From IMG/VR virus record IMGVR_UViG_3300048591_000147, positions 62,001 through 126,000 of that record: a stretch of DNA of 64,000 bases. One strand, written 5' to 3'. Below the pieces are notes generated by a model. It did not search any database. It was not told the DNA's origin and saw only the letters and a list, made by a program, of their open reading frames with translations. Below are positions 14,266 through 62,204 of this stretch, piece by piece. Position 1 is the first letter of the stretch, and each line of letters opens with the position of its first letter. The position numbers and the translations under genes are program-made.

Positions 14266-14343
14266 GGCTCCGTAGCTTAGCGATCTAAAGCGGGTAATTC
14301 TAAACTACTGTCATCCTCGGTTTGAATCCGAGCGGAGCCACCA
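14266..14343 (+). tRNA. tRNA with CUA anticodon (amber-suppressor-like)
   Basis: GGCTCCG/CGGAGCC acceptor, ACCA end, loop TT-CTA-AA, T arm CTCGG-TTTGAAT-CCGAG. Confidence 0.75.
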
Positions 14344-14918
14344 ATATTTCTTCCACAATATGTTGAAGTTTGGCTATGACAATTTGGACATAACCATCTT
14401 AAATTTTCAATGCGATGATCATTCCGAATGCCATTTATGTGATCTAAATGTAATATTAATGGGCGCCCATTCCATATTAGTTCATTTGATAATATACATG
14501 AACTAATTGAACAATGATATGGAAGTAACGAATCTCTATGAATTCTACGTTTAACAACTGGCGTGTCTACAGTTGAATTTGCTTGAAATATATAAGAGTT
14601 TGGGTAATCCTTTTGCCCTGTGCATAATCGCTTTCTATCTATTGTTAGTTTTCCAGATTTAATCGCCAATGTTATAGCAGTAGGAGATATGCCAGTGGCC
14701 AATTTTAATTCTGTGATACACAGTCCTGTATCATATATTTTTTGAACTTCCACCCAATCATAATTTTTAGTTTTTACGCCGTGCTTCTTATTTAAAGAAT
14801 TTTGCCTAGCATGATAAGCTACGGTAGATTTTGCCACCCCAAGTTTATTGCAAATTTCACTATAAGTTTTTCCATCATTAATCATATTAATAATATCATC
14901 TTTTTTATTTGTCTTCAT
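14277..14918 (-). CDS. HTH + HNH homing endonuclease
   Basis: N-terminal HTH; LHLDHINGIRNDHRIENLRWLCPNCHSQT; GATAAATA upstream at 14949-14956. Confidence 0.85.
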   Translation of the reverse strand: MKTNKKDDIINMINDGKTYSEICNKLGVAKSTVAYHARQNSLNKKHGVKTKNYDWVEVQKIYDTGLCITELKLATGISPTAITLAIKSGKLTIDRKRLCTGQKDYPNSYIFQANSTVDTPVVKRRIHRDSLLPYHCSISSCILSNELIWNGRPLILHLDHINGIRNDHRIENLRWLCPNCHSQTSTYCGRNIGGSARIQTEDDSSLELPALDR

Positions 14919-15041: not shown

Positions 15042-15647
15042 ATGTTTCGTTTTCTTGTTAAAGTTCCTAATAAAGTAGGCATTGCCTTTTCGGGTGGTGT
15101 CGATTCACTAGCTGTTGCACACTTCCTGAAGAAAGGTAAAAAGGATATTACTTTATACCATTTCAATCATGGTTGTGAGTATTCCAAAGACATCGAAGAC
15201 AAGTGTAGGGAGTCAGCAGAAAAGCTATCTCTTCCCATCATTGTGAGTGGTTATGATGGTGCTCGCCTGAAGGGCCAATCTCTTGAGGATGCATGGCGTA
15301 GAGCTAGGTATCGTTTCCTTAGATCGTTCGATGAGAAAATTATCACTTGTCATCATCTTGACGATGCTGTAGAGACTTGGGTTTGGTCCAGCATGCATGG
15401 TGAAGGTAAGTTGATCCCTGTAGAATCTGGCAACATTGTTAGACCATTTCTCACCACTGAAAAGTCAACTTTTGAGAACTACAGTAAAAACAATGACTTA
15501 GAAGTTGTCGAAGATGAAATGAACAAAGATCAGCACTTGATTCGAAACTACATGCGTGTTAATCTAATGCATCACTTGTATCACATCAATCCCGGTCTTC
15601 GAACAGTTATCAGGAAAAAGTATAATGAACTTCAAAGACACAGTTAA
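15042..15647 (+). CDS. tilS: tRNA(Ile)-lysidine synthetase-like PP-loop ATPase (catalytic domain only)
   Basis: AFSGGVDS, HFNHG, R.ARY.FL, TCHHLDDAVET, RPFL and RNY.R motifs. Confidence 0.85.
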   Translation: MFRFLVKVPNKVGIAFSGGVDSLAVAHFLKKGKKDITLYHFNHGCEYSKDIEDKCRESAEKLSLPIIVSGYDGARLKGQSLEDAWRRARYRFLRSFDEKIITCHHLDDAVETWVWSSMHGEGKLIPVESGNIVRPFLTTEKSTFENYSKNNDLEVVEDEMNKDQHLIRNYMRVNLMHHLYHINPGLRTVIRKKYNELQRHS

Positions 15648-16311
15648 GCACATGATGTTTAACTACCCCTCAATTTTTCCTACTCCGTTGGCTGCATGCC
15701 GTCAACTATTCTTCACTGTTGGCAATGGGATGGAATGGGTAAAGGGTGAATTGGTTACCACCATGCGCTATCCGGGCGAGAAGAATTCCGCCACGATGTT
15801 GTATGATGATATTGATGACAATATCAAACACTATAAAGAAATGGATTATATTGTTTCAAAGCGGTACATTCTGGAAGAAGAATTGCGCAGGCTCAATCGC
15901 AAGTTCATTGAAGAACATATCGATGAATTCATTAGCGATAACTGCATGATCAATCTAACTGACCGAAGTAGCACCTGTAATGGTCATTATGAATTGAATA
16001 TTGGTGATTATGCAAAAGTCCTTTGTGTTCCCAATAATGTTAAAAAGGATTGGGGGCAAGCCGCGTTAGATGCTATCGATTGGGCATTTGTCAACCTCAA
16101 TATGGTCTATGGTGTTGCTAACCAAAAGCCGTATGATGCGCATTGGCCAGACAGTGCAAAGCAGACCCATAGCAATCTCATGAAGGCAAGAGACAAGATT
16201 AGAAATATCATGAAACTCCCCACTCAGCAGCAGTTGGACGATATTGCTGATAAAATCATCACCGAAATTTTAAACGAAGAGAAACTGGAGAAAGAAAATG
16301 CTCAAGCTTGA
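15625..16311 (+). CDS. hypothetical protein
   Basis: 228-aa ORF coupled to tilS. Confidence 0.75.
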   Translation: MNFKDTVKHMMFNYPSIFPTPLAACRQLFFTVGNGMEWVKGELVTTMRYPGEKNSATMLYDDIDDNIKHYKEMDYIVSKRYILEEELRRLNRKFIEEHIDEFISDNCMINLTDRSSTCNGHYELNIGDYAKVLCVPNNVKKDWGQAALDAIDWAFVNLNMVYGVANQKPYDAHWPDSAKQTHSNLMKARDKIRNIMKLPTQQQLDDIADKIITEILNEEKLEKENAQA

Positions 16312-16788: not shown

Positions 16789-17913
16789 GTGAACCAGTTC
16801 CAGCAGACTCTTTACAATGATCTCATGAAGCTTTGTGAGAACGAAGCTTTCTATTATGTAGATCAACAGGTAGATGGTAAGGTGTTCCGTGTCTTCACGT
16901 ATCGGTTGGCATCTTACACTGAGTTCCTGCTTCCGAATGCGATGGAATGCCGTGGTCACACTTTCTTGGTGGCTGGCGATGTTCCCTTGGCGCTGGTGTG
17001 CTTGCCTCCTGCAAAGTTTTTCAATGCTTATGAGAATCCATTCGTAATGGATGTGGATTTCTCCAAGTCATTGATTTATATGGATAAGAAGGATGGCTCA
17101 CTGATTTCGTCAGTGCGTGATGCTCTTTCGCAGTGGGGTTTCCGTCTGAAGTCCAAGACTTCATTCACTTCTTCTCAGGCGAAGGATGCTGAACGTTTGC
17201 TGAATAGCCATCCAGTACTTGAAAAGTTTATCCTTGATCAGACTGCATTGGATCGTACCGTGAACATGGAATATTGTTCGCCTGCGAACCGGATTGTGAT
17301 TGGTTATGCTGAACCGCACCTGACCATTCTCAATGTGCGCGATAACAAGACTGGTGAAACTTTTTACCCACATGATTTTTGGCATATTGAATCTATCCGC
17401 AAGTATTTGGTGATGTATCTAACCAATCTTGAAGTGCAGTATTCTTATGATGAAATTCTGGCGATGACTGGCATCGAAGGTTTCGTGGTTCTGTTTGATG
17501 ATGGTCGTGTATGCAAGGTGAAGACCGAAGCGTATTGCGTGCTTCACAAGACCAAGGATTCTATCAACAACCCGAAAGCATTGTTCCAAGCGTGTTTGTA
17601 TGAAACTTCTGATGACTTGCGTTCATTGTTCCACGATGATGCGCTGGCGATGATTCAGATCAACAACATGGAGACTTTGGTTCGGTTGCACTACAACCAC
17701 ATTTCTTCACAGTTGCAGAAGTTTTACATTCAGAACCACTTGCTTTCGAGAAAGGATTACGCTATCTTAGGTCAACAAACTTTCACCGATGGCACCTTCT
17801 CTCTGGCGATGAATCTCTATCTTGGAAAGGATATGGGGTTGAAAGATTGGATGATGAAGGAATACCGTCGATTTGGTATCAATGATGCCCCAGTAGTGGA
17901 ACCGGAGAACTAA
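16789..17913 (+). CDS. rnlA: RNA ligase 1 (T4 gp63-like)
   Basis: FTYRLASY, ECRG, KFFN, motif I KKDGSLI, EY..P.NRIV, EGFV and KVKT..Y; own sigma70 promoter. Confidence 0.9.
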   Translation: MNQFQQTLYNDLMKLCENEAFYYVDQQVDGKVFRVFTYRLASYTEFLLPNAMECRGHTFLVAGDVPLALVCLPPAKFFNAYENPFVMDVDFSKSLIYMDKKDGSLISSVRDALSQWGFRLKSKTSFTSSQAKDAERLLNSHPVLEKFILDQTALDRTVNMEYCSPANRIVIGYAEPHLTILNVRDNKTGETFYPHDFWHIESIRKYLVMYLTNLEVQYSYDEILAMTGIEGFVVLFDDGRVCKVKTEAYCVLHKTKDSINNPKALFQACLYETSDDLRSLFHDDALAMIQINNMETLVRLHYNHISSQLQKFYIQNHLLSRKDYAILGQQTFTDGTFSLAMNLYLGKDMGLKDWMMKEYRRFGINDAPVVEPEN

Positions 17914-19863: not shown

Positions 19864-20270
19864 TAAATGAAAACCATCCTCCAGTTATATCCGAATGAAG
19901 ACGTGTTTGGTTTCGAACACGGTGACGAGTTTGTGTACTGGGTTGCTGTCAATGACAACCAGAAAAGCATCATCACCGCAATCAACTGGTTGATGTGCTC
20001 AGAGATTGACGTACATGAGAATATCGATTATGATATCTCAAACGGTGGTATTGGCGAAGCGTTGAACGTGTTGAATCAAATTCTAACTGACCTAAACTAA
20101 GGATTAAACGAAATGGCCGAAGAACGAAAGACTGGTATGGATTACCCGGAGTACAAGACTCCGAAGAGCATCGCAATGTGCTTGCGAGTTGACGAAATTT
20201 GTCGTAAGCTCACCGAAGAGCGCATGGCAATTCAGCGTAAGTTGTTGAATCGTCACGGAAAGTTGCGCAA

Positions 20271-20744
20271 GTGAAGATACGGGTTGACCTGAACGTCTTT
20301 GTCTCTGGCGATGCGGACGATGTAGATGACTTGATCGTCAGTTCCATGACGTCTGATGACAATGATGATAATGCATGGCCAGAGTTGACCGCATTGATGC
20401 CGTCTGGTTGCTGCGAATGGCTCAATGTAATCCGCGAGGCTGGTGAACCACCTGATGAGTGGGATATTGTCGGGATGGACGATTCTGATGATGTGACTGC
20501 TGCATTGACATTATCATTTTACCTTCCGAAGATGGAGAACTGGTTGGAAGTGTACAATGCATTGGGGGATATCAGTAGAGAATATCCTCTATTGGAGATC
20601 ACCCACGAAGTGGTTATCGAAAAGTTTCAGATAGCAGAAAAGACGACCATGAAAGATGGTGTGTTAATTTCTGAAGAATCATATGAATGGGATAGTGACG
20701 AAGGCATTGCACTTCGCGAAAGTCTGGGATGTGATATCGAATGA
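20271..20744 (+). CDS. acidic hypothetical protein
   Basis: 157-aa D/E-rich ORF, coupled on both sides. Confidence 0.7.
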   Translation: MKIRVDLNVFVSGDADDVDDLIVSSMTSDDNDDNAWPELTALMPSGCCEWLNVIREAGEPPDEWDIVGMDDSDDVTAALTLSFYLPKMENWLEVYNALGDISREYPLLEITHEVVIEKFQIAEKTTMKDGVLISEESYEWDSDEGIALRESLGCDIE

Positions 20745-25000: not shown

Positions 25001-25076
25001 GCCCTCTTAGCTCAGAGAAATAGAGCACTCCCGTTCTAGGGAGGGGTCGGTGGTTTAAGTCCATCAGAGGGCGCCA
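25001..25076 (+). tRNA. atypical tRNA with a 6-nt anticodon loop (GTTCTA)
   Basis: Perfect GCCCTCT/AGAGGGC acceptor, D and T arms, CCA; CTCCC/GGGAG encloses only 6 nt. Confidence 0.6.
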
Positions 25077-26089: not shown

Positions 26090-26178
26090 GCCGGGGTAGC
26101 CAAGTGGTTGACGGCAATTGATTTGTAATCAATCGGGCTTTACGCCCCTCGCAGGTTCGAATCCTGTCCCCGGCTCCA
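26090..26178 (+). tRNA. tRNA-Tyr(GUA), second copy
   Basis: ATTGA-TTTGTAA-TCAAT, long variable arm, CCA. Confidence 0.9.
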
Positions 26179-28049: not shown

Positions 28050-28138
28050 GGTAGTCTGGCCGTCTGGCTGAAGGCACCCGACTGATAATCGGTGAGTCTA
28101 ACGACTCTAGGTAGGTTCGATCCCTACGGCTACCACCA
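28050..28138 (+). tRNA. tRNA with GAU (Ile) anticodon and long variable arm
   Basis: Loop CT-GAT-AA; variable hairpin GAGTC-TAAC-GACTC; CCA. Confidence 0.8.
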
Positions 28139-34042: not shown

Positions 34043-34953
34043 CCATCATTAGCCGACCATTCATTATTAATATAATTTAGATTATGTCCAAATTTTGATA
34101 TTATTCGCAGAAGACTTCTCTTATTTAATCCGATAGTTCTACTAGCTAATGATATAGATGCGTATACAACATTGTTTATAGTAATGGATTTATTTGTACT
34201 ATGTTGTATCAATGGTAATTGTACTTTTGGATTGTCATTATTATACCACATTCTATTGGATAGCAATAAGTGTCTACCAAATTTATTGATCGCATTAGTA
34301 ATTGCATGTGTGCCCATATCTATGGCCTTTGACGCATTCAATATTGATGGATACATCACATCATTGATGGATATTGGTTTAGACTTCGGATGAGTTTCAC
34401 TGGAATAAGTAGTTTTGTTAGCTACTACATATTCTGATTTATTCTTTTGCTTACGGCCGCCTCGTGGTCGTCTCATTTTGTCTATTGTTTCTTTGGAAAA
34501 TATTCTACCTTTCATCGCATTTGATAATTTCTCTCTCGTTTCTTTAGATTTTATCTTACCTTTCATCTTCTCCCTTGTTTGTAAAGAATGTTTCTTACCT
34601 AGTCTGGCTAAACGCCTTTTTTCTTTAGTTGCTTCAGATGTTGGCTGTTTCTTTTCTGTTGGACCGCCTTGACCACCGGGTGCGACATTATATCCTATGG
34701 CCGGATTTCTAGCATCTAATTGCACTATCAATGTCTGTTCCATATCTAAAATTGTTTGTTTGTCATCTGATTCAAAAAGAATTTCTGATTGAAAATTCTC
34801 AAATCCGTATAAATGTAATGCATGTTGAAAATGAGATTTACCTTTATTTCTCTTACAATGTTTCTCAAAACGTTCTTCTATATTTTTAGATGTATAGCCG
34901 ATGTAAAACTTACCATCTATACGATTAGTTACTTTGTATACTATGTATTTCAT
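34024..34953 (-). CDS. free-standing GIY-YIG homing endonuclease with NUMOD3-like repeats
   Basis: IVYKVTN..DGKFYIG, GYN and HSLQTREKM / KSKETREKLS repeats; TATAAATA at 34975-34982 (minus strand). Confidence 0.88.
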   Translation of the reverse strand: MKYIVYKVTNRIDGKFYIGYTSKNIEERFEKHCKRNKGKSHFQHALHLYGFENFQSEILFESDDKQTILDMEQTLIVQLDARNPAIGYNVAPGGQGGPTEKKQPTSEATKEKRRLARLGKKHSLQTREKMKGKIKSKETREKLSNAMKGRIFSKETIDKMRRPRGGRKQKNKSEYVVANKTTYSSETHPKSKPISINDVMYPSILNASKAIDMGTHAITNAINKFGRHLLLSNRMWYNNDNPKVQLPLIQHSTNKSITINNVVYASISLASRTIGLNKRSLLRIISKFGHNLNYINNEWSANDGQPTRS

Positions 34954-35052: not shown

Positions 35053-35526
35053 ATGATAAAGATAATCAAGAAAGATGTAACGACTGTGACATCTGGTGTT
35101 GTAGCACATGGAGCGAACGCAGTTTCTGTTATGGGAAGTGGGGTAGCATTAGCTATTGCAGGGAAATGGCCCAAAGTCTTTGAACAATACAAAATATATT
35201 TGGCAACTTACGGAAAGGATTTCCATAAAGCATTAGGAAACACACAGCTAGTCATACTAGATGACAATCTATGGGTGGTAAATTGCATTACTCAAGTGTA
35301 TACTGGTTTTGATAAGTTTGGCAATCCTCCAGCTAGCCTAGATGCAATTGAGAGATCATTGCGGGAGACTATCATACACTGTAATACGCTTAATTTAGAT
35401 CTTTATACACCACAGATTGGTTGTGGTCTTGGTGGTCTAGACTGGGAAACTCAAGTGAAGCCAATCTATGAAAAGCTTTCTGAAGAGTTGAGCGATGGTT
35501 TGAACTGGTATGTTTGCACAATCTAA
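35053..35526 (+). CDS. macrodomain (ADP-ribose processing) protein
   Basis: AHGANA...MGSGVALAI and PQIGCGLGGLDW motifs. Confidence 0.85.
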   Translation: MIKIIKKDVTTVTSGVVAHGANAVSVMGSGVALAIAGKWPKVFEQYKIYLATYGKDFHKALGNTQLVILDDNLWVVNCITQVYTGFDKFGNPPASLDAIERSLRETIIHCNTLNLDLYTPQIGCGLGGLDWETQVKPIYEKLSEELSDGLNWYVCTI

Positions 35527-37143: not shown

Positions 37144-38079
37144 GAGAGTAGTTATCGATTGGGAGTGTGGTAAAAATACAACACCCCGTGCGCATTTGTT
37201 GCACAAATACAACAAAATAAAGCTTGCATTGTTTTATAAGTGGTGTAGAATACAATACATACACGGGAGACAAGAAATGAACGCACAACATCTCTGCAAC
37301 TTGCACGCCTTGGAAGAACTGCGCTCTGATTATACCAAGCCCATGACTCGTGAAGAATTCATTGCATATTGGCTCAACTGTGGCAATGATCCTTATGATA
37401 TGCCCGCTCTGGAATCATGCATCGAAGGAATCGGTGAAAGCATCAGTGAATTTGGGAGCGAGTGCGCCTTGTTTGGTGATGCTGGTCCCGGTTCTCTTTA
37501 TCATATTCAACGCAGAATCGAACGCATTCAGGGTGTTGTACATCGCTTGAATGAATTTGGTTGCAATATTACGATGCCGCAGTTTCGTATTCCGATGCTT
37601 GGTGCTCATGCTGCATACGATGATCGTTATTGATTCAGCAACTGTTCAGGTTCAACCCGTATAATACATTACATCACCAATCAGGGGTCCGATAACATGA
37701 AGAAATTCAATAGGGTAAAGGATACCGTAGAGTCGGTGATGGAACGGCTCACCGATATTCATCATATGTATTATGATCCCATTGACAAGAGCACTATCGA
37801 TTATCCGAAAATGTGTAGGCATCTTGACTTCCAGAAGGGAGAAGTTAAGAATTACCTAGCCAGAGGTTGGTACGGTGGTGAAATTGTTGCGTTTTTGCAA
37901 CACTTAAAGGAAATTAACCCGCATCAACCCGAAGAACTCGCAATAGCGAACATGACCAGTATTCGCGATATGGTATGCAGGCGTTTTGGTCTTCCGCTTA
38001 CAACACGTCAAATGTGATATTCAGCAACCGTTCAGCTAATTACGTTATAATAGCACCATACCAACCAAGGACAAACGCC

Positions 38080-38613
38080 ATGACCATCGAAACTGATCTG
38101 CGCGCTGCTTTCACTCGTCACATGGACAATGCTTGCCGTTTGTATCCTGATCTGGCTCGCATCAGCAGCAGGGTGATGTTTGAGATCAAGTATAACATGG
38201 GGCGACGGGCAGGAACTGCATACGGTCACAGTCGGGTGTGTGTCAATCTCGCCATGGCTCGCCAGAATTTCGGTCACATTGCAAACGATACGATTCCTCA
38301 CGAAATTGCGCATATCATCTGCTCATATTTCAATTGGGACAATGGGCACGGACGCATGTGGAAGCGTGTGGCTGCAAGCCTTGGAATCGTCCCGAATCGT
38401 TGCTTTTCCACTGTTGACACTGGCATCAAAGCTGTTACCATGCGTCAGCGGACTAAGTACCTGCACAAGGCAACGTGTGGAACTGAAATTTGGGTGGGTG
38501 ACGTGCTCCACAAAAAGATCATGAACGGTGATAATAGTCGTTTGCTCAGGAATACGGGTGGTCGATTGTCTGCCAGCACCTACACGGGGAAGTTTAACCT
38601 TTCACGCTCCTGA
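38080..38613 (+). CDS. SprT-like zinc metalloprotein
   Basis: HEIAH and GHGRMWK motifs; tandem-TTCAG promoter at 38021-38047. Confidence 0.85.
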   Translation: MTIETDLRAAFTRHMDNACRLYPDLARISSRVMFEIKYNMGRRAGTAYGHSRVCVNLAMARQNFGHIANDTIPHEIAHIICSYFNWDNGHGRMWKRVAASLGIVPNRCFSTVDTGIKAVTMRQRTKYLHKATCGTEIWVGDVLHKKIMNGDNSRLLRNTGGRLSASTYTGKFNLSRS

Positions 38614-38662
38614 TCAAATAGTTCTTGATTCTCAGCAACAGATAGTCTATAGTTGATTCTCT

Positions 38663-38770
38663 GGGAGCGTGGCCAAGTGGTAAGGCAGCAGACTTTTTAA
38701 GTATTTTTACAGTCATTAAGAATACTTAGAAATCTGTTTATCGTGGGTTCGAATCCCACCGCTCCCACCA
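38663..38770 (+). tRNA. tRNA (probably Lys-UUU) with a 33-nt insertion in the anticodon loop
   Basis: Perfect acceptor, D and T arms and CCA; 40 nt between the GCAGA and TCTGT anticodon stem strands. Confidence 0.75.
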
Positions 38771-38826
38771 AATATTCAAAAAGTCGAACCACTCGTATAA
38801 ATACTTTCATACGAGTGGAGTTCGAT

Positions 38827-39447
38827 ATGAAAGAATGTAAAAAGTGTAATAAGGGGTTTTTACCAAGTAAAGGGTTAGTCAGTTACTGTTCGCTACAATG
38901 TAGAAACTCAAGAGTCTTTTCTGAAGAAACTAAAACCAAAAAGAGAGAAGCATCGGTTATATATTGGAACTCATTAACCGATGAACAACGTGTGGCAATT
39001 TCCAAGAGTATTCACTCCAAAGAAAGAGTTGAAAAATCACGTCAGACCTACAGAAAAAAATTGTTGGCGGCAGATTTTGAGTCGCTAGGTTCTGGTGGAC
39101 AAAGAACTAGAATTATACATGAACAGGATAACACTTGTAATAGATGTAAAAACGCAGAATGGTTGGGTTTCCCTATCATTCTAGAAATTGATCATATAGA
39201 TGGTAACAATTTGAATAATGCAAGGGACAACCTAGAAGGCATATGTCCCAATTGTCATTCTTTAACGCCTACGTGGCGCGGTAGGAACAAACCGTCACGA
39301 AATGGTTTAGTGAAAGTTACTGATGAAGAGTTGTTGAAAAATATTTCAGAGTATGGTAACATAAGACAAGGTCTTCTAGCTTCCGGTATTGCTGCAAAGG
39401 GTAGCAACTATGAGAGAGCAAAGAAGTTATTAAATATTGACAAATAA
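38827..39447 (+). CDS. HNH homing endonuclease with N-terminal zinc finger
   Basis: C..C...YCS..C; LEIDHIDGNNLNNARDNLEGICPNCHS; TATAAATA at 38796-38803. Confidence 0.85.
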   Translation: MKECKKCNKGFLPSKGLVSYCSLQCRNSRVFSEETKTKKREASVIYWNSLTDEQRVAISKSIHSKERVEKSRQTYRKKLLAADFESLGSGGQRTRIIHEQDNTCNRCKNAEWLGFPIILEIDHIDGNNLNNARDNLEGICPNCHSLTPTWRGRNKPSRNGLVKVTDEELLKNISEYGNIRQGLLASGIAAKGSNYERAKKLLNIDK

Positions 39448-41043
39448 AGGAAGTTACACATGCTAGCAATCGTCTCAATTTTACTATTTCTTTGCGTTGG
39501 AATTCCATTGGCATTCTACAATGGTGTCATTGTTGCAGATGCTTGGAATTGGTTCATCAAAGATCCATTTGGTCTACCTGCACTCTCTAGCCTTCAGGGT
39601 TGGGGTATGATGCTGTTCATTAGCTCCACCACGATCTTCAGGGAAGTTCAACGAGTACTTGCCCAGAAGAAAGAGAATGAACCCGATTTTGAAGAAGCTT
39701 TGGGCAAGACTCTCTTACTTTTCATTACATTCTTTATCACTGCACTATTCGTCCATGGTTACATGTGGGCCATTCACACTTTATTCTGGTGAAAACTTGT
39801 GAATAATCAATACTTTATCTCGAAACCATTTTACGATGCTGTCGAGAGTGCATGCAAAACGCTGGAAAATTCGAAAATCAGTGTGGAGCGAGAAATGGCG
39901 GCACAAAGTCCGCCATATGCTGGTGAAGTGTTGAATCTATTGTTGACAAGGTTAGCCGAAATTGACTTAGAAATCAGTGCCTTACAGGTTTTCTTGAAAC
40001 AATTTCAGTATTTGTTCAGGCGCCATTCAGTCAATTGATGGTATCATAGCTTTAACAACTGGAGATTGACATGTACGAACAAATGATCGGCAAGAAAGTC
40101 ACCAAGCTGCGGGATGGTAAGAACCCCAAGCCGTTCAAGTCACGGTTGATCGTGAACACTGTCAAGGGTATCATCAATCATCCCATCCTGAACAGGCCAG
40201 CATTCACATTCGAAGAAGATGACTCATTCGTGGAATGTCGCCGCTGCTATGCACAATCTGATGAAGGTGATTCTGACAGATGGTGTCAGTAAAGAATTCA
40301 TAGAAAATGGTAAAGCCGAGGATTTTGAACCCCATGAGCACTCGTAAACAAGTCTGGTATTTCAAGTTCAATTATTGTATACTTGGCCCTATCATTTGGC
40401 AAGCAAAATGGGCGGGTAGGGAGTATAATCCAGAAGATTTACCGGATTATGTTTATGCGGCACTCGGAATGGCTGGACATGTTCGCCTCACCCGTGCTAG
40501 AATGTATCCTGATTTGAATCAGTTTGAAAGCGAGAGTAAGTTGGGTAGAACATACCCGCTACACTGGCGCTGGAACCGTGTAGAAATTCAACCGGAGTAA
40601 CTGAAATGGCTCAGATGAACATCGAATGTATTGATATACAGGAATTCCTGAATGTTATCAAGGGCTTAGTCATGCGAGGCTTGACATTCGACGCCAATGC
40701 GACTACATTCAAGATCAAACTTACTGGAGGATTTTAACATGACACAAGCAATAATCCGCGTGAAGGGTGATCCAAGCGTTGGAATCAAGCATCAAGACTT
40801 CATTGTTGATGACCTTGAACTCATGGACCAAGCACATGCTACGGATGTTGCCTTGGCGTTGCGTCAATGCTTCGCGAGGATCACTGGAGAACATGTCAAT
40901 GATGTTACTGTCAGGTTTGTCAATGATGAAATTGTGGCAGATGAACGAGCATTGGATGATCGCATGGGTAGCTGGAAAGTCGAAGGGTTGACTGACACCT
41001 ACCTCAACGAACAGCGCAATTAATCGCGCTTTTCCTAGTCTCC

Positions 41044-44460: not shown

Positions 44461-44782
44461 ACAAATTCAGGAACCATTCAGGTTAGTAATGATAGAATGG
44501 TTTCAACAAATGAGGAAGAGATACCGTAACTTAGATTGTCACCCTCCGGTTGGGTTAACGATGGTTCGATTCCATCTGACAATGTAAGCGCCCACGGGTA
44601 TATGTCTAACGAGGCTCGGACATACCATTTCAGTGCGATGTGACCGTTACACAAAGGTAAGAGAGTTTGGTGAGATTACACCATTCAGGTATGTCTAGTC
44701 ATGCCCCATCGCCCAATTACACTAGGTAAGCCATGGCCATGGTGAAGCCTACACGTAGAGTCATGATCTATGTGGTGTTGCG

Positions 44783-44855
44783 TCCAGATTCTTCTAGTGG
44801 TTAGGAAAGGCCCCCGATTGCGGGCTTAACACAGGTTCGAATCCTGTATCTGGAC
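44783..44855 (+). tRNA. tRNA-like element with 8-nt anticodon loop and no encoded CCA
   Basis: TCCAGAT/ATCTGGA acceptor, AGTGGTT D loop, ACAGG-TTCGAAT-CCTGT T arm. Confidence 0.55.
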
Positions 44856-45215
44856 TAAGTTCTTCAATCAAATCAAGAGGTTATCGTGAAAATTTTTCTG
44901 CAAATATTCTCTGCCGTACTACTGATAATTGCGATAACCGCAGTGAACAAAGCGTTACAGTCGCCTATGAATGGTATGCCTTTTGTAGCTGGTGCATGTG
45001 TCACAGCATTCATCGAAGTATTCCGCGCCTATTGCAGGAAGGATTAACATGAACGTCATCCGCTCAAACCTTGAAACATATTTTTACATGGCTCTGCAAA
45101 CTTCGCGGGAAGTTGATCAACGGATTGGCGAAAACTTCAAGTCCATTCAGACAGCAGCAATCGAAGATACACTGAAAGCCGTCCAAGATGGCGAACAACT
45201 GTGGATTGTAGAATA

Positions 45216-47063: not shown

Positions 47064-47939
47064 ATGAGCAAGGTTCATCAGATTCTGACTGACAAAGTGC
47101 TGGCCATGATTGACGGTGGTGTTGCCCCTTGGAAGCGTCCTTGGCGCGCTGCTGGCCGTCCGCGCAACATTCGTGGCACCAACTATCATGGCATCAACTA
47201 TTTCATGCTGTCGATGGTTGCTGAAATGAATGGCTGGTCGAATGTGTGGATGACGTTCAATCAGATCAAGGAAAAGGGTGGCACGATCAAAGAAGATCAG
47301 AAGAAGAATGGAACGTGTGCATACTTCTTCAAGATGCTGGAACGTGAGAATGCCATCACTGGCGATATGGAAAACAGCCACCCGATTTTCCGATTCTTTC
47401 TGGTCTTCAATCTGGATCAGGTTGACGGAATCATCGTCAAAGGGGTGAATGATCAGACTGGCACTGTGCATGCTGAATTGCCCGCTCCGCAGAGCATCGT
47501 GGATGGCTACCAGAATGCGCCTGAGATTCGTTTCGGTGGTGGTGCGGCATACTACCAGCCTGTAACCGATAAGGTCACCATGCCGCTTCTGAGTGCATTC
47601 CATACAGCGGAACAGTACTATGCCACCATGTTCCACGAATTGGCGCACAGCACTGGTCATCTGACTCGCTTGAACCGCAAGGAAATCATGGACCCGGTTG
47701 GATATGCGTCACATGAATACTCGCTTGAAGAATTGGTTGCTGAGCTTACCAGTGTCTACTTGTGTGATGAATGTGGTATCACGAATAATCGCACGCTGGA
47801 AAACTCTGCTGCATACCTTGCAAACTGGTACAGCGCACTGAAGAATGATCCGAAAATGTTCGCCACTGCTGCCGCGCGAGCACAGAAAGCCGCAACGCAT
47901 ATCCTTGGCAAGGTCGAGGATGCTGCGCAAGAGGATTGA
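47064..47939 (+). CDS. ardC: ArdC-like antirestriction / ssDNA-binding protein
   Basis: PWKRPW, Y.GIN, W.TFNQ, FLVFN.DQ and HELAHSTGH...EELVAEL zincin motif. Confidence 0.85.
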   Translation: MSKVHQILTDKVLAMIDGGVAPWKRPWRAAGRPRNIRGTNYHGINYFMLSMVAEMNGWSNVWMTFNQIKEKGGTIKEDQKKNGTCAYFFKMLERENAITGDMENSHPIFRFFLVFNLDQVDGIIVKGVNDQTGTVHAELPAPQSIVDGYQNAPEIRFGGGAAYYQPVTDKVTMPLLSAFHTAEQYYATMFHELAHSTGHLTRLNRKEIMDPVGYASHEYSLEELVAELTSVYLCDECGITNNRTLENSAAYLANWYSALKNDPKMFATAAARAQKAATHILGKVEDAAQED

Positions 47940-56265: not shown

Positions 56266-57003
56266 ATGAGTGAAATGATCGCCTTTCCATCCATCGAATC
56301 TTTGCGCCATGTTGTCAAAGGCACGGAAATTCGTTGCAAAATCAATAACTTGCAGTTGCCCAAGGTCGAGTACATTGGCACTGTCAAGCTCCATGGCAGC
56401 AATGCGTCTGTGCGATTCACTGCGGATGGCCAGATCATCCCACAATCTCGCAACCGTGTGCTGAGCGTTGGCGATGACAATTTCGGCTTTGCCGCATTCG
56501 TTGAAAAGAACAAACCACTTTTCAAGCATTTCCAAGACATCATTCCCGAAAATGAATTCACAGTTTACGGTGAGTGGTGTGGTGGTAGTGTTCAACCCAA
56601 GGTAGCATTGGAGCAATTGGAAAAGCATTTTGTCATCTTTTCCATCTTGATTGATGGTGTCATGTGCCCAGTGGTGCTGGGTGGTGATGTGTTTGTCTGG
56701 AATGAAGCTGGAATCTGGTGTGTCAGTCAAATTCCAACGTATAAGATCACAGTCGATTTCAGTCGTCCAGAAGATGTGGTTGATGAACTGACCGGTCTTA
56801 CCATCGCTGTAGAAAAGGAATGTCCATGGGGTAAATTCCGTGTGCAGAAGGATTTCAACAATACTTGCACCATTAACAATGGTAATATCACATGGGATAA
56901 TGATATTGCGGATTGCAAACTAAAGGATGAAATAGAATCAAAGATTATCCGATATGTCCAAGCAAATAACTTGCTTAGTAAGAGAATTACCATTTCTGTT
57001 TGA
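56266..57003 (+). CDS. rnlB: RNA ligase 2 family, N-terminal fragment
   Basis: FPSI..LR, motif I KLHGSN, QSRNR, DN.GFA and GEWCG; conserved part ends after ECPWGKF. Confidence 0.8.
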   Translation: MSEMIAFPSIESLRHVVKGTEIRCKINNLQLPKVEYIGTVKLHGSNASVRFTADGQIIPQSRNRVLSVGDDNFGFAAFVEKNKPLFKHFQDIIPENEFTVYGEWCGGSVQPKVALEQLEKHFVIFSILIDGVMCPVVLGGDVFVWNEAGIWCVSQIPTYKITVDFSRPEDVVDELTGLTIAVEKECPWGKFRVQKDFNNTCTINNGNITWDNDIADCKLKDEIESKIIRYVQANNLLSKRITISV

Positions 57004-61727: not shown

Positions 61728-62204
61728 ATGCGCAAGAATTACAAGGTTGGATATATCGGACGCAAGCCAGTATTTGTGTCGGTGGAATACGCCAATAACG
61801 CGCTGTCGATTACGGGTGTAGTCAATCCCAATCGCTGCGGCAATTGTGATAGCTGCGGGCAGATTGTCTCATCCCTGCCGGAGATTGACACGTTCACAGG
61901 TGAATGGACGCAAGCGGATATTAATCAACTGTTGTTCTATTGGGAACGCTGGCACCTGAACGATATGCGGGCAGGGTCGCAGGTACAAGAGGACTATTTG
62001 CGCAAGAATCCAGTTAGCGTGCGCTATCCTGAGTCGTATTATGTCAAGGCATCGGACGCACTGGCTGAGGCTGGTATTAACCCTGATGCTGATGGCTACA
62101 AGTATGGCAGCGCGTGGAAGTTTGAAGCTGTACCAGCTCGGGTGATTGCGTGGTTATTCTCTTTTGAGATGGCAGATGATCTGCCAGTAGTGTGGGCTAG
62201 ATGA
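61728..62204 (+). CDS. phage hypothetical protein
   Basis: WERWHLNDMRAG and YKYGSAW motifs; sigma70 promoter and GGAG RBS. Confidence 0.75.
   Translation: MRKNYKVGYIGRKPVFVSVEYANNALSITGVVNPNRCGNCDSCGQIVSSLPEIDTFTGEWTQADINQLLFYWERWHLNDMRAGSQVQEDYLRKNPVSVRYPESYYVKASDALAEAGINPDADGYKYGSAWKFEAVPARVIAWLFSFEMADDLPVVWAR

Follow-up and report, generated by a model that had tools for sequence, protein, structure and literature searches.

Introns of bacterial and phage tRNA genes are thought to be self-splicing ribozymes, while protein-catalyzed tRNA splicing is regarded as an archaeal and eukaryotic trait. Bacterial group I introns in tRNA genes sit in the anticodon loop, can be mobile, exceed 200 nt, and feature a conserved P3-P9 catalytic core, a terminal G and a U-G pair at the 5' splice site (PMC3984707). 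Archaeal and eukaryotic introns removed by proteins (EndA/Sen endonuclease plus RtcB or Trl1) are short, pair with the anticodon, reside at position 37/38 of the anticodon loop, and carry a bulge-helix-bulge at the splice sites; T4 Pnkp plus Rnl1 can replace yeast tRNA ligase. Short, non-group-I inserts in the tRNA genes of Lak megaphages and other huge phages have been reported only as "enigmatic" introns, conserved between samples, polymorphic for presence and absence, one being itself tRNA-like (Devoto et al., 10.1101/356790). In collaborative homing a free-standing endonuclease gene flanks a gene interrupted by an ORF-less group I intron, present or absent among relatives, as F-CphI with the psbA intron of cyanophage S-PM2 (PMC6083498) and mobE with the nrd genes (PMC2790892; reviewed in PMC2988022). 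Homing endonuclease genes are also nested in phage tRNA clusters, as T4 SegB (PMC2988022, PMC13096335) and the HNH genes of T5-like phages (Salmonella phage Kenya-K16), and presumably target tRNA-gene DNA. RNase III excises hairpins inserted in bacterial 23S rRNA by a double-strand cut, and the rRNA fragments are not re-joined; in the T4 repair pathway of PrrC, Pnkp and Rnl1 a phage ligase seals a broken tRNA-Lys anticodon loop, in response to host damage.

The locus analyzed here lies in a window of 64,000 nucleotides (positions 62,001 to 126,000 of IMG/VR record IMGVR_UViG_3300048591_000147) from the 315-kb genome of a jumbo phage. A tRNA gene, read as Lys(UUU), is interrupted in the anticodon loop by a conserved 33-nt hairpin, which probably has to be cut out and re-ligated by proteins, a process not known for bacteria or their viruses. 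Like the Lak inserts, it is short, unrelated to group I introns, conserved between samples, and belongs to a set polymorphic for presence and absence, which includes 50-nt Asn inserts that are tRNA-like; no structure rule, link to homing endonucleases or mechanism was given for the Lak inserts, whereas the insert described here is part of a defined hairpin family in tRNA-Lys with an inferred 2-nt 3' overhang geometry, HNH linkage and a matching ligase inventory. As in collaborative homing, the insert has no ORF, the endonuclease gene lies next to the interrupted gene, and is controlled by a hairpin that hides its ribosome-binding site and holds a late-promoter-like TATAAATA; yet the intervening sequences are 26-33 nt hairpins with no ribozyme core, which cannot self-splice, and homologues of the endonuclease tolerate uninterrupted loops. 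In T4 and T5 the tRNA genes neighboring the endonuclease genes are uninterrupted. As in archaeal and eukaryotic introns, the insert pairs with the anticodon and any removal must be protein-catalyzed, but its position is 36/37, and the setting is bacterial-type (sigma-70 promoter, T4-like genes). RNase III excision and ligase sealing have precedents in 23S rRNA and in T4, respectively, and their combination into a splicing pathway is the new proposal.

Structure of the interrupted tRNA gene

The first-pass annotation had described an otherwise perfect tRNA with its own sigma-70 promoter and a 33-nt hairpin insertion in the anticodon loop, devoid of a bulge-helix-bulge, and this description was confirmed. 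The Rfam tRNA model (RF00005) matches window 38663-38767 at 61.4 bits (E 7e-11; gathering threshold 29 bits), all 71 model positions being matched, with a 36-nt unaligned block inside the anticodon loop. The score is among the five best tRNA scores in the genome. ARAGORN misses the gene under default settings, and with introns allowed finds 38663-38770 with a 33-nt intron. The minimum-energy fold is a cloverleaf whose anticodon stem continues into a 16-bp hairpin, with only C32 bulged, to form a 21-22 bp helix (-43.6 kcal/mol, z = -6.7; 0 of 200 shuffles fold as well). Features of the locus are listed in Table 1, where L017 is a relative, L006 a syntenic relative and L020 a metagenomic contig; numbers preceded by "genome" are positions in the phage genome.

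Table 1. Coordinates of features in the 64,000-nt window
Feature	Position	Strand	Description	Support
Promoter	38625..38653	+	Sigma-70-like (TTGATT, 17-nt spacer, TATAGT), about 9 nt upstream of the tRNA 5' end	Promoter scan (9 of 12 matches); conserved in L006 (TTGACT-17-TATAGT)
tRNA exon 1	38663..38697	+	Acceptor strand, D arm, 5' anticodon-stem strand, C32 U33 U34 U35 U36	Rfam alignment, ARAGORN
Insert	38698..38730	+	33-nt hairpin; first base pairs with third-from-last base, last two bases (G, A) pair with U36 and U35; 7-nt apical loop	Folding, variants; arm sequences found once each in 315 kb
tRNA exon 2	38731..38770	+	A37 A38, 3' anticodon-stem strand, 5-nt variable loop, T arm, acceptor strand, A73, encoded CCA	Rfam alignment, ARAGORN
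Hairpin upstream of HNH gene	38783..38826	+	Contains TATAAATA (38796-38803), buries the GGAG ribosome-binding site of the HNH gene; resembles I-TevI-type control of T4 homing-endonuclease genes (PMC2988022)	Fold z = -5.1; almost invariant in L006, L017 and L020, one compensatory pair change in L006
HNH gene	38827..39447	+	Free-standing homing endonuclease, 206 aa	Weak Pfam HNH_3 match; HNH core 63% identical to a paralogue; about 490 homologues
Rnl1 gene	16789..17913	+	T4 Rnl1-type RNA ligase with tRNA-specific C-terminal domain, candidate sealing enzyme	Pfam RNA_lig_T4_1 (3.6e-11), T4_Rnl1_C (2.7e-19)
SprT-like gene	37975..38613	+	Metalloprotease, upstream neighbor, synteny anchor to L006	Pfam; L006 gene table
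ORF	15625..16311		Between the TilS-like gene and the Rnl1 gene	No Pfam match, poor Atlas model only
tRNA	14266..14343		CUA anticodon	ARAGORN

Removal of the insert yields the loop CUUUUAA, as stated in the first-pass annotation, which had also mentioned registers giving UUA or UGA. The Lys(UUU) reading is supported by L006, which carries an uninterrupted tRNA with loop CUUUUAA between the same promoter and the same downstream hairpin and HNH gene, and by paralogues at genome 34337 (loop CUUUUAA) and genome 35367 (CUCUU, insert, AA), which have 100% identical bodies. In the sequences L007 and L008, HNH homologues sit next to a tandem Lys(CUU) and Lys(UUU) pair. The mature anticodon and lysine charging were not observed, and these data leave the identity of the product undecided. 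The UGA register, and any rule that the intron ends in G, fail in L017 and L020, which have A where the window has G.

Variants of the insert and insert-less alleles

The insert is present in independent assemblies (L017, L018 and L019; L020; contigs of runs X6 and X7), and is not an assembly artefact. Freshwater and wastewater sites hold this phage (runs X1-X13). Members of the insert family reside in at least three different Lys-tRNA bodies, those of the window, genome 35367 and L020, and the family looks mobile. Between the window and L017 the exons are 75/75 identical, against about 13 changes expected at the divergence of the neighboring gene, the insert 19/33 with 7 additional gaps, the HNH gene 508/621 (82%), and downstream DNA about 52%. 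The exons thus show no relaxed constraint, and the condition under which the first-pass annotation would have called the gene a pseudogene, an insert absent or unconserved, was not fulfilled. The L017 variant scores 62 bits with the Rfam tRNA model. Contigs from runs X6 and X7 have identical stems in different flanks, their only indels being in the apical loop.

The helix is kept while its sequence is not. The apex is UUCG in L017 and UACG in genome 35367, and is a 7-nt loop in the window; this lack of conservation rules out that the apical loop acts as a displaced anticodon loop. G-C pairs change to G-U and to A-U, U-G to U-A, and 9 of 21 pairs of the consensus fold have changes on both sides. 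Since the arm sequences are not repeated in the genome, the insert is not a dispersed palindromic repeat or MITE. A group I intron was similarly ruled out: neither intron nor ribozyme families of Rfam, known small ribozymes included, match the inserts, and the U36-G pair, present in the window and in genome 35367, is replaced by U-A in L017 and L020, with no G near the 3' junction there.

Intron-less alleles in relatives had been named in advance as a point to check. L006 has a normal loop at the same locus, though in a different tRNA body, and exact insert-less alleles were found for sister inserts: Asn2 carries an insert in this genome and none in the sequence L254, Trp an insert in the sequence L255 and none in this genome. 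No insert-less copy of this exact tRNA body was found in metagenome, viral and GTDB genome collections. L020 also carries, just upstream, a truncated tRNA 5' half that ends in its anticodon loop. Close relatives sought in GenBank phages and IMG/VR by DNA and by peptide patterns were not found, or are masked. A specific pattern (insert base plus T arm) gave 0 hits in IMG/VR and JGI metagenomes, and a loose insert-base pattern 117 hits in IMG/VR, all chance matches with no T arm nearby.

Linkage to homing endonuclease genes

All 5 HNH and 3 GIY-YIG paralogues found by phmmer in the phage abut or overlap tRNA genes, and both plus-strand HNH genes directly follow insert-bearing tRNAs. The HNH gene of the window starts 57 nt after the CCA, and the same layout is seen in L017 and L020. 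In nearly every context examined, homologues of this HNH sit beside a tRNA with a Lys-type anticodon loop. The link between insert and adjacent HNH, suggested in the first-pass annotation, is real and general. Simple immunization of the gene against the adjacent HNH, also suggested there, is weakened, since close HNH homologues coexist with uninterrupted Lys or Asn anticodon loops (L006, L254 and the sequences L012 and L015), and the insert persists without an adjacent HNH in genome 35367 and in the run X7 contig. As HNH homologues coexist with uninterrupted loops, the insert is not needed for self-protection. Cleavage of the insert-less allele by the HNH was not assayed, and the only indirect hint is the truncated tRNA half in L020.

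Junction geometry and enzyme inventory

For the window, L017, L020, genome 35367 and the L255 Trp insert the junction was fixed independently, by synteny, a paralogue or an insert-less allele. In each case the first insert base pairs with the third-from-last base, and the excised hairpin would carry a 2-nt 3' overhang, which is RNase III geometry. Helices measure 17-22 bp including the anticodon stem, a size in line with the roughly two turns of double-stranded RNA of RNase III substrates. The rule is not universal: the insert of the sequence L010 fits only if that tRNA is read as Val(UAC), not Lys, that of the sequence L196 fits only in a slipped register, and the 50-nt Asn inserts, which have a different architecture, do not fit. 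A survey in IMG/VR of 38 single-hairpin arms was too noisy to decide, many being eukaryote-type Tyr introns of giant viruses and the true junctions not being known; the overhang criterion as a whole is left undecided. The stem above the presumed cut varies from 8 to 12 bp, which argues against measurement from the loop.

The enzyme inventory fits 3'OH/5'P chemistry. In addition to Rnl1, three RNA_ligase-family genes score above the Pfam cut-off, plus one weak hit. RtcB, Tpt1, the PNK 3'-phosphatase, EndA and RNase III were not found in the phage; the EndA family (PF01974) is absent from the complete genome, while the controls hit four archaea. The ORF next to Rnl1, tested as a candidate nuclease, gave no informative match.

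Interpretation of the insert

What the data show is a phage tRNA gene, read as Lys(UUU), interrupted between U36 and A37 by an ORF-less hairpin of a family of short structured inserts in the anticodon loops of this phage lineage's tRNA genes; as members occur in different tRNA bodies, show presence/absence polymorphism, and lie beside free-standing homing-endonuclease genes, they look like homing-associated introns. The rest is inferred. The precursor cannot decode, because the anticodon is buried in the helix, and the strongly conserved exons imply that the insert is removed from the RNA. A double-strand-specific endonuclease, most likely host RNase III, would cut both strands at the base of the hairpin, leaving U36-3'OH and 5'P-A37 held together by the anticodon stem, and the phage's own ATP-dependent ligase (Rnl1, or an Rnl2-type enzyme) would seal the break directly, with no end-healing. 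The adjacent HNH most likely drives inheritance of the tRNA-plus-insert-plus-HNH cassette by cutting related tRNA-Lys genes in co-infecting phages (collaborative homing). This reading as a whole is tentative, with a probability of about 0.45; that the gene is functional and its insert removed is somewhat more likely than not, while RNase III plus phage ligase, given removal, falls slightly short of even odds. Splicing itself is unproven: a spliced junction in RNA had been proposed as the test, but the only runs labelled RNA, from wastewater, behaved as DNA and are probably DNA, and showed no 38697-to-38731 joint; one 38688-to-38740 joint has a short side and probably comes from another organism's tRNA. 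No endonuclease is identified, RNase III being assumed to come from an unknown host. Exon identity could reflect recent gene conversion rather than selection for decoding, and the uninterrupted Lys(UUU) gene at genome 34337 could make this copy dispensable. The interpretation in the first-pass annotation is therefore supported in part: the Lys reading, conservation and the HNH link hold, immunization is weakened, and protein splicing with phage ligases remains an inference, neither Rnl dependence nor nuclease activation having been tested.

Removal by a different route, be it a dedicated phage endoribonuclease among the many unannotated ORFs, the neighboring HNH acting on RNA, or a host anticodon nuclease, with sealing possibly after end-healing, is unlikely but has some support. 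The insertion point is not constant across families (36/37 here, 35/36 in Asn and Trp, 34/35 if L010 is Lys), and the Asn-type inserts have a conserved three-way structure with a T-arm-like hairpin, which does not look like an RNase III substrate. A stand-alone P-loop kinase exists (L004:1444-1953), and both plus-strand HNH genes follow interrupted tRNAs; yet the lack of 3'-phosphatase, Tpt1, RtcB and EndA, the HNH homologues flanking uninterrupted tRNAs, and the insert at genome 35367 without adjacent HNH weigh against this view. Also unlikely is that the insert is never removed, being a scar or shield that breaks the recognition site of a homing endonuclease or an RNA-level nuclease, the RNA being inert or a tRNA-shaped decoy kept by homing and gene conversion while decoding relies on genome 34337. 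The backup gene, the tight association of homing endonucleases with tRNA genes, the lack of an identified splicing enzyme, and insertions that need no removal in other tRNAs of this phage (Lys, Thr and Ile tRNAs have long variable arms) agree with this possibility. However, three different insert-bearing bodies all keep perfect cloverleaves with compensatory stem changes, exon identity exceeds that of the neighboring gene, the hairpin is itself kept by compensatory changes that a mere site disruption would not need, and HNH homologues tolerate uninterrupted loops next door. Moreover, Asn(GUU) is encoded in this genome only by insert-bearing genes, the sole other Asn call being a dubious ARAGORN-only AUU gene at genome 106782, and an inert reading would leave the otherwise complete tRNA set without Asn.

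An ochre suppressor (anticodon UUA), made by cutting one base earlier on each side, with genome 35367 giving an amber suppressor (CUA), is very unlikely. The register CUUU plus AAA is arithmetically possible in every variant, and the phage already has a tRNA with a CUA anticodon, but no sign of stop-codon recoding was found (code 11 gives full coding density, and long ORFs do not grow when any stop codon is read as sense), synteny and paralogy point to Lys, and this register gives a blunt cut rather than the shared overhang. A chance hairpin, an assembly artefact or a recently killed pseudogene, favored only by default tRNA finders skipping the gene, is contradicted by the occurrence in at least six independent assemblies with conserved exons and pairing, and by the fold z-score.

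In a broader and unlikely view, phages of bacteria run a protein-only tRNA splicing pathway, in which hairpin mini-introns spread between tRNA genes with the help of free-standing homing endonucleases, are cut out by host RNase III, and the exons are joined by phage Rnl1 or Rnl2. If this holds, it would reveal a new maturation pathway. Phage RNA ligases would then have a housekeeping role in tRNA maturation, and not only be repair enzymes against anticodon nucleases, which would explain why tRNA-rich phages carry them, and a mobile intron could be reduced to a hairpin of about 30 nt. The masked anticodon may also keep the precursor safe from tRNA-Lys-specific host nucleases. The locus offers a concrete and testable system, with a defined hairpin family, junctions fixed by insert-less alleles, a cut geometry shared by several inserts, a candidate nuclease, a candidate ligase in the same genome and a homing-endonuclease partner. 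Annotation is affected as well, as default tRNA finders skip these genes, which here include the only Asn(GUU) tRNAs of the phage.

TATAAATA was also monitored as a genome-wide late promoter. It is not enriched overall (26 observed, 24 expected), but lies before 4 of 8 endonuclease genes.

Structure of the interrupted tRNA-Lys gene

The 314,956-bp virus record, of which the window spans bases 62001-126000, is complete, has direct terminal repeats, and is a jumbo phage. The Rfam tRNA model scores 61.4 bits on the interrupted gene over all 71 positions, leaving a 36-nt block unaligned inside the anticodon loop. ARAGORN skips the gene at default settings, and reports a 75-nt tRNA plus a 33-nt intron when introns are allowed. 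The minimum-energy fold is a cloverleaf, the anticodon stem of which continues, after a bulged C32, into a 16-bp AU-rich helix capped by a 7-nt loop (-43.6 kcal/mol, z = -6.7; z = -6.0 for the anticodon arm folded alone). The gene encodes CCA, and is preceded by a TTGATT-17-TATAGT promoter. The first-pass annotation, which had described an otherwise perfect tRNA with its own promoter and a 33-nt hairpin in the anticodon loop, is accurate on these points, and the observation is confirmed.

Coordinates of the features described in the text (window and genome positions refer to the stretch analyzed and to the complete phage record, respectively; L001 and L002 positions are the equivalent positions of the same features; L017, L020, L254 and L255 are loci of relatives)
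Location	Strand	Feature
window 38625-38653		TTGATT-17-TATAGT promoter
window 38663-38770		tRNA gene with 33-nt insert, read as Lys(UUU)
window 38783-38826		stable hairpin burying GGAG upstream of the HNH start
window 38796-38803		TATAAATA inside the hairpin
window 38827-39447		ORF for the downstream HNH protein
window 14266-14343	+	tRNA with anticodon CUA (amber-suppressor type, called Pyl by ARAGORN)
window 14277-14918	-	HNH ORF overlapping the CUA tRNA on the other strand
window 15042-15647, 16789-17913, 35053-35526, 47064-47939, about 56368-56655		set of tRNA- and RNA-related genes: PP-loop ATPase (TilS/TtcA-like) three genes upstream of Rnl1; Macro-domain protein; ArdC-like anti-restriction metallopeptidase; RNA_ligase-family hit
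window 25001-25076 and 44782-44856		one tRNA with an abnormal anticodon loop that ARAGORN could not assign; one "Asn(AUU)" call made by ARAGORN only
window 26090-26178, 28050-28138; genome 34337		tRNA-Thr, tRNA-Ile and tRNA-Lys with long variable-arm hairpins (87-89 nt genes)
genome 34337-34423 (L001:2338-2424)		uninterrupted tRNA, loop CUUUUAA
genome 35367-35479 (L001:3368-3480)		tRNA with 26-nt insert, presumed Lys(CUU) precursor
genome 48532-48654 and 48668-48806 (L002:2033-2155, 2169-2307)		two tRNA-Asn(GUU) genes, each with a 50-nt insert
genome 48336-48411		uninterrupted tRNA-Trp
genome 48433-48511		tRNA-like gene between Trp and Asn1; also in L255
genome 106782 (window 44782)		Asn(AUU) call, ARAGORN only
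genome 100827 (window 38827), 48862		HNH paralogues
genome 76277-76918 (window 14277-14918), 20008-20736, 88129-88887	-	HNH paralogues
genome 23158, 33438, 47537		GIY-YIG paralogues
genome 33410		TATAAATA upstream of an endonuclease gene
genome 20764, 88911	-	TATAAATA upstream of endonuclease genes
L254:1130-1214		insert-less tRNA-Asn allele
L255:2488-2590		tRNA-Trp(CCA) with 29-nt hairpin insert
L017:2650-2835		promoter and RNA of roughly 190 nt upstream of tRNA-Lys
L020:1071-1109		truncated 5' half of another tRNA

Other interrupted tRNA genes in the genome

Four genes of the phage pass the Rfam tRNA cut-off while carrying large inserts in the anticodon loop, the gene described above, one at genome position 35367, and two near 48.6 kb. 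The body of the 35367 gene is 100% identical to that of the uninterrupted gene at 34337, and both are unusual, class-II-like bodies with a long variable arm. The loop reads CUCUU, a 26-nt hairpin capped by UACG, then AA, which would make this gene Lys(CUU) beside Lys(UUU). A GIY-YIG gene lies just upstream of the 34337 gene. The inserts of the two genes near 48.6 kb, found between U35 and U36, are made up by a closing stem, a small hairpin and a T-arm-like hairpin with a UUCGAAU loop, a tRNA-like shape suggesting that RNase P or RNase Z could be involved. Apart from the dubious Asn(AUU) call, not reported by Rfam, these are the only Asn tRNAs of the genome. The hairpin arms of the Lys inserts occur only once each in the genome, so that the element is not a dispersed repeat.

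Further variation was observed among the tRNA genes of this phage. tRNA-Thr, tRNA-Ile and tRNA-Lys are normally class I, yet carry here long variable-arm hairpins, insertions which would need no removal. The tRNA-like gene located between Trp and Asn1 has acceptor, T arm and CCA, but a 9-nt A-rich anticodon loop, and is called neither by Rfam nor by ARAGORN. No sign of genome-wide stop-codon recoding was found to accompany the tRNA with the CUA anticodon.

Distribution of the insert in relatives

Close relatives are absent or masked in GenBank phages and IMG/VR. The insert was therefore monitored in contigs of public sequencing runs aligned to window positions 38000-39600, and in contigs encoding homologues of the downstream HNH protein. 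Freshwater DNA contigs (runs X6 and X7) carry the tRNA plus insert with at most one substitution and two one-base indels, both in the apical loop, while their flanks are diverged or unrelated. Wastewater contigs (runs X1 and X4) are about 90% identical overall and have a rewritten insert. These runs are labelled RNA but behave as DNA, and the spliced joint, named in the first-pass annotation as the test of removal, was not seen in them.

Among the contigs encoding HNH homologues, L017, L018 and L019 have exons identical to those of the window, and a 26-nt insert featuring the same 8-bp base, a UUCG-capped apex, and A in place of the G that pairs with U36. Upstream of the tRNA-Lys of L017 lies a promoter and an RNA, the two ends of which form an acceptor stem plus T arm plus ACCA around a large internal insertion, with no Rfam match. 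L020 has a different tRNA body, with compensatory changes in the acceptor and anticodon stems, and a 27-nt insert whose 5' half is identical to that of the window. A truncated 5' half of another tRNA, ending in its anticodon loop, lies directly before the L020 gene, and may be a footprint of endonuclease-induced recombination. L006 is syntenic, with SprT, the same promoter, the same downstream hairpin and an HNH 67% identical, but its tRNA-Lys(UUU) has a normal 7-nt loop and a variable-arm hairpin. Uninterrupted tRNA-Lys or Lys-like genes flank the HNH homologue in L012, L015, L016, L007 and L008. An unrelated 31-nt hairpin insert is found in L010 and L011, and an unrelated 36-nt hairpin after CUUUU in a Lys-like tRNA of the IMG/VR locus L196.

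Alleles lacking the insert, which the first-pass annotation had asked to be sought among relatives, are found for sister inserts. Asn2 is uninterrupted in the relative L254 (loop CUGUUAA), and interrupted in this genome and in L255. In contrast, tRNA-Trp is interrupted by a 29-nt hairpin, between C35 and A36, in L255, and is uninterrupted in this genome and in L254. L254 and L255 hold further tRNA-like genes with large D-region insertions.

Evidence for sequence constraint

In the comparison of the window with L017, identity is 75/75 in the exons, 19/33 plus 7 gaps in the insert, 53/56 in the spacer hairpin, 508/621 in the HNH gene, and about 52% in the next 300 bases. At the divergence of the HNH gene about 13 exon changes would be expected, and none is seen. 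The insert helix survives sequence turnover, G-C changing to G-U and to A-U, and U-G to U-A. The apex of the 35367 insert (ACUUU-UACG-AGAGU) is homologous to that of L017. A consensus fold of six arms has 21 pairs, 9 of them with changes on both sides, and the Asn-type insert has 20 pairs, 9 of them compensatory, across four sequences in three or more tRNA bodies. A dead gene or a mere site disruption would not need any of this.

Association with homing endonucleases

Five HNH and three GIY-YIG paralogues were detected in the genome by phmmer, Pfam matches being examined as well, and every one abuts or overlaps a tRNA gene. The three minus-strand HNH ORFs end antisense inside tRNA genes (Cys, the CUA tRNA, Thr). 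The start of the HNH gene next to the interrupted tRNA-Lys is preceded by a stable hairpin (z = -5.1), which buries the GGAG and contains TATAAATA, the arrangement described for T4 I-TevI (PMC2988022). TATAAATA, the T4 late-promoter consensus, sits inside hairpins just upstream of 4 of the 8 endonuclease genes, but is not enriched genome-wide (26 observed, 24 expected). The cassette is nearly invariant in L006, L017 and L020, whereas the upstream flanks are unrelated.

Taken with the presence/absence polymorphism of the sister inserts, this looks like the signature of homing-associated introns with a free-standing endonuclease, known as collaborative homing (PMC2988022, PMC6083498). Endonuclease genes inside phage tRNA clusters are known from T4 SegB and from T5-like phages. 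The link to the HNH gene is real, but more complex than the immunization against the adjacent HNH considered in the first-pass annotation. Self-immunity is not the whole story, as HNH homologues sit next to uninterrupted loops (L006, L012, L015, L254), and the insert persists without an adjacent HNH (the 35367 gene and the X7 contig).

Possible route of removal

No ribozyme family matches the inserts. The insert is too small for a group I intron, the terminal G is not conserved, and there is no bulge-helix-bulge. The phage encodes Rnl1 with its tRNA-specific C domain, three RNA_ligase-family genes above the Pfam cut-off plus one weak hit, and a stand-alone P-loop kinase. EndA, Tpt1, RtcB, a PNK 3'-phosphatase and RNase III are absent from the phage. 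The sealing chemistry available is therefore 3'OH plus 5'P.

Where the junctions were fixed independently, by synteny, a paralogue or an insert-less allele, the first base of the excised hairpin would be paired to its third-from-last base. This holds for the window, L017, L020, the 35367 gene and the Trp insert of L255, and results in a 2-nt 3' overhang, the hallmark of the products of RNase III, an enzyme that also leaves 3'OH and 5'P ends. The helices are 17-22 bp long, and AU-rich around the presumed cut. The fit does not extend to all inserts, and leaves the overhang rule undecided: L010 conforms only if read as Val(UAC), L196 only in a slipped register, Asn-type inserts do not conform, the stem above the cut varies from 8 to 12 bp, and a wider survey was uninformative. 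Host RNase III has been implicated in the processing of T4 tRNA precursors, T4 Rnl1 seals broken tRNA-Lys anticodon loops, and T4 Pnkp plus Rnl1 can replace yeast tRNA ligase. A cut by host RNase III, followed by sealing by the phage ligase, is therefore proposed.

The interpretation put forward in the first-pass annotation is supported in part. A Lys(UUU) gene carrying a mini-intron is the best supported reading. The interrupted gene, the evidence for constraint on it and its link to the HNH gene rest on the sequences compared, while removal of the insert, and the enzymes involved, are inferred, splicing itself not having been demonstrated. Short introns in phage tRNA genes and collaborative homing are both already known, the locus differing from the former in its link to homing endonucleases and from the latter in the small size of its insert, and there is a realistic chance that it reveals a new splicing route in bacterial viruses.

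Short inserts in other viral tRNA genes

Short introns in tRNA genes of Lak megaphages, including one that is tRNA-like, have been reported as enigmatic (10.1101/356790), and no mechanistic follow-up was found in the literature. A pattern scan of IMG/VR for class-I tRNAs with 45-72 bases between the D and T arms returned more than 116 loci, so that short inserts in viral tRNA genes are common. Some of these are eukaryote-type Tyr introns of giant viruses, others form recurrent families. Many viral tRNA-like genes (IMG/VR loci L138-L251, for example L152, L155, L177, L184, L195, L199 and L241) have 20-45 extra bases in the anticodon region, and one recurrent family features a hairpin followed by a conserved ACAGCAA motif just before the 3' stem strand.
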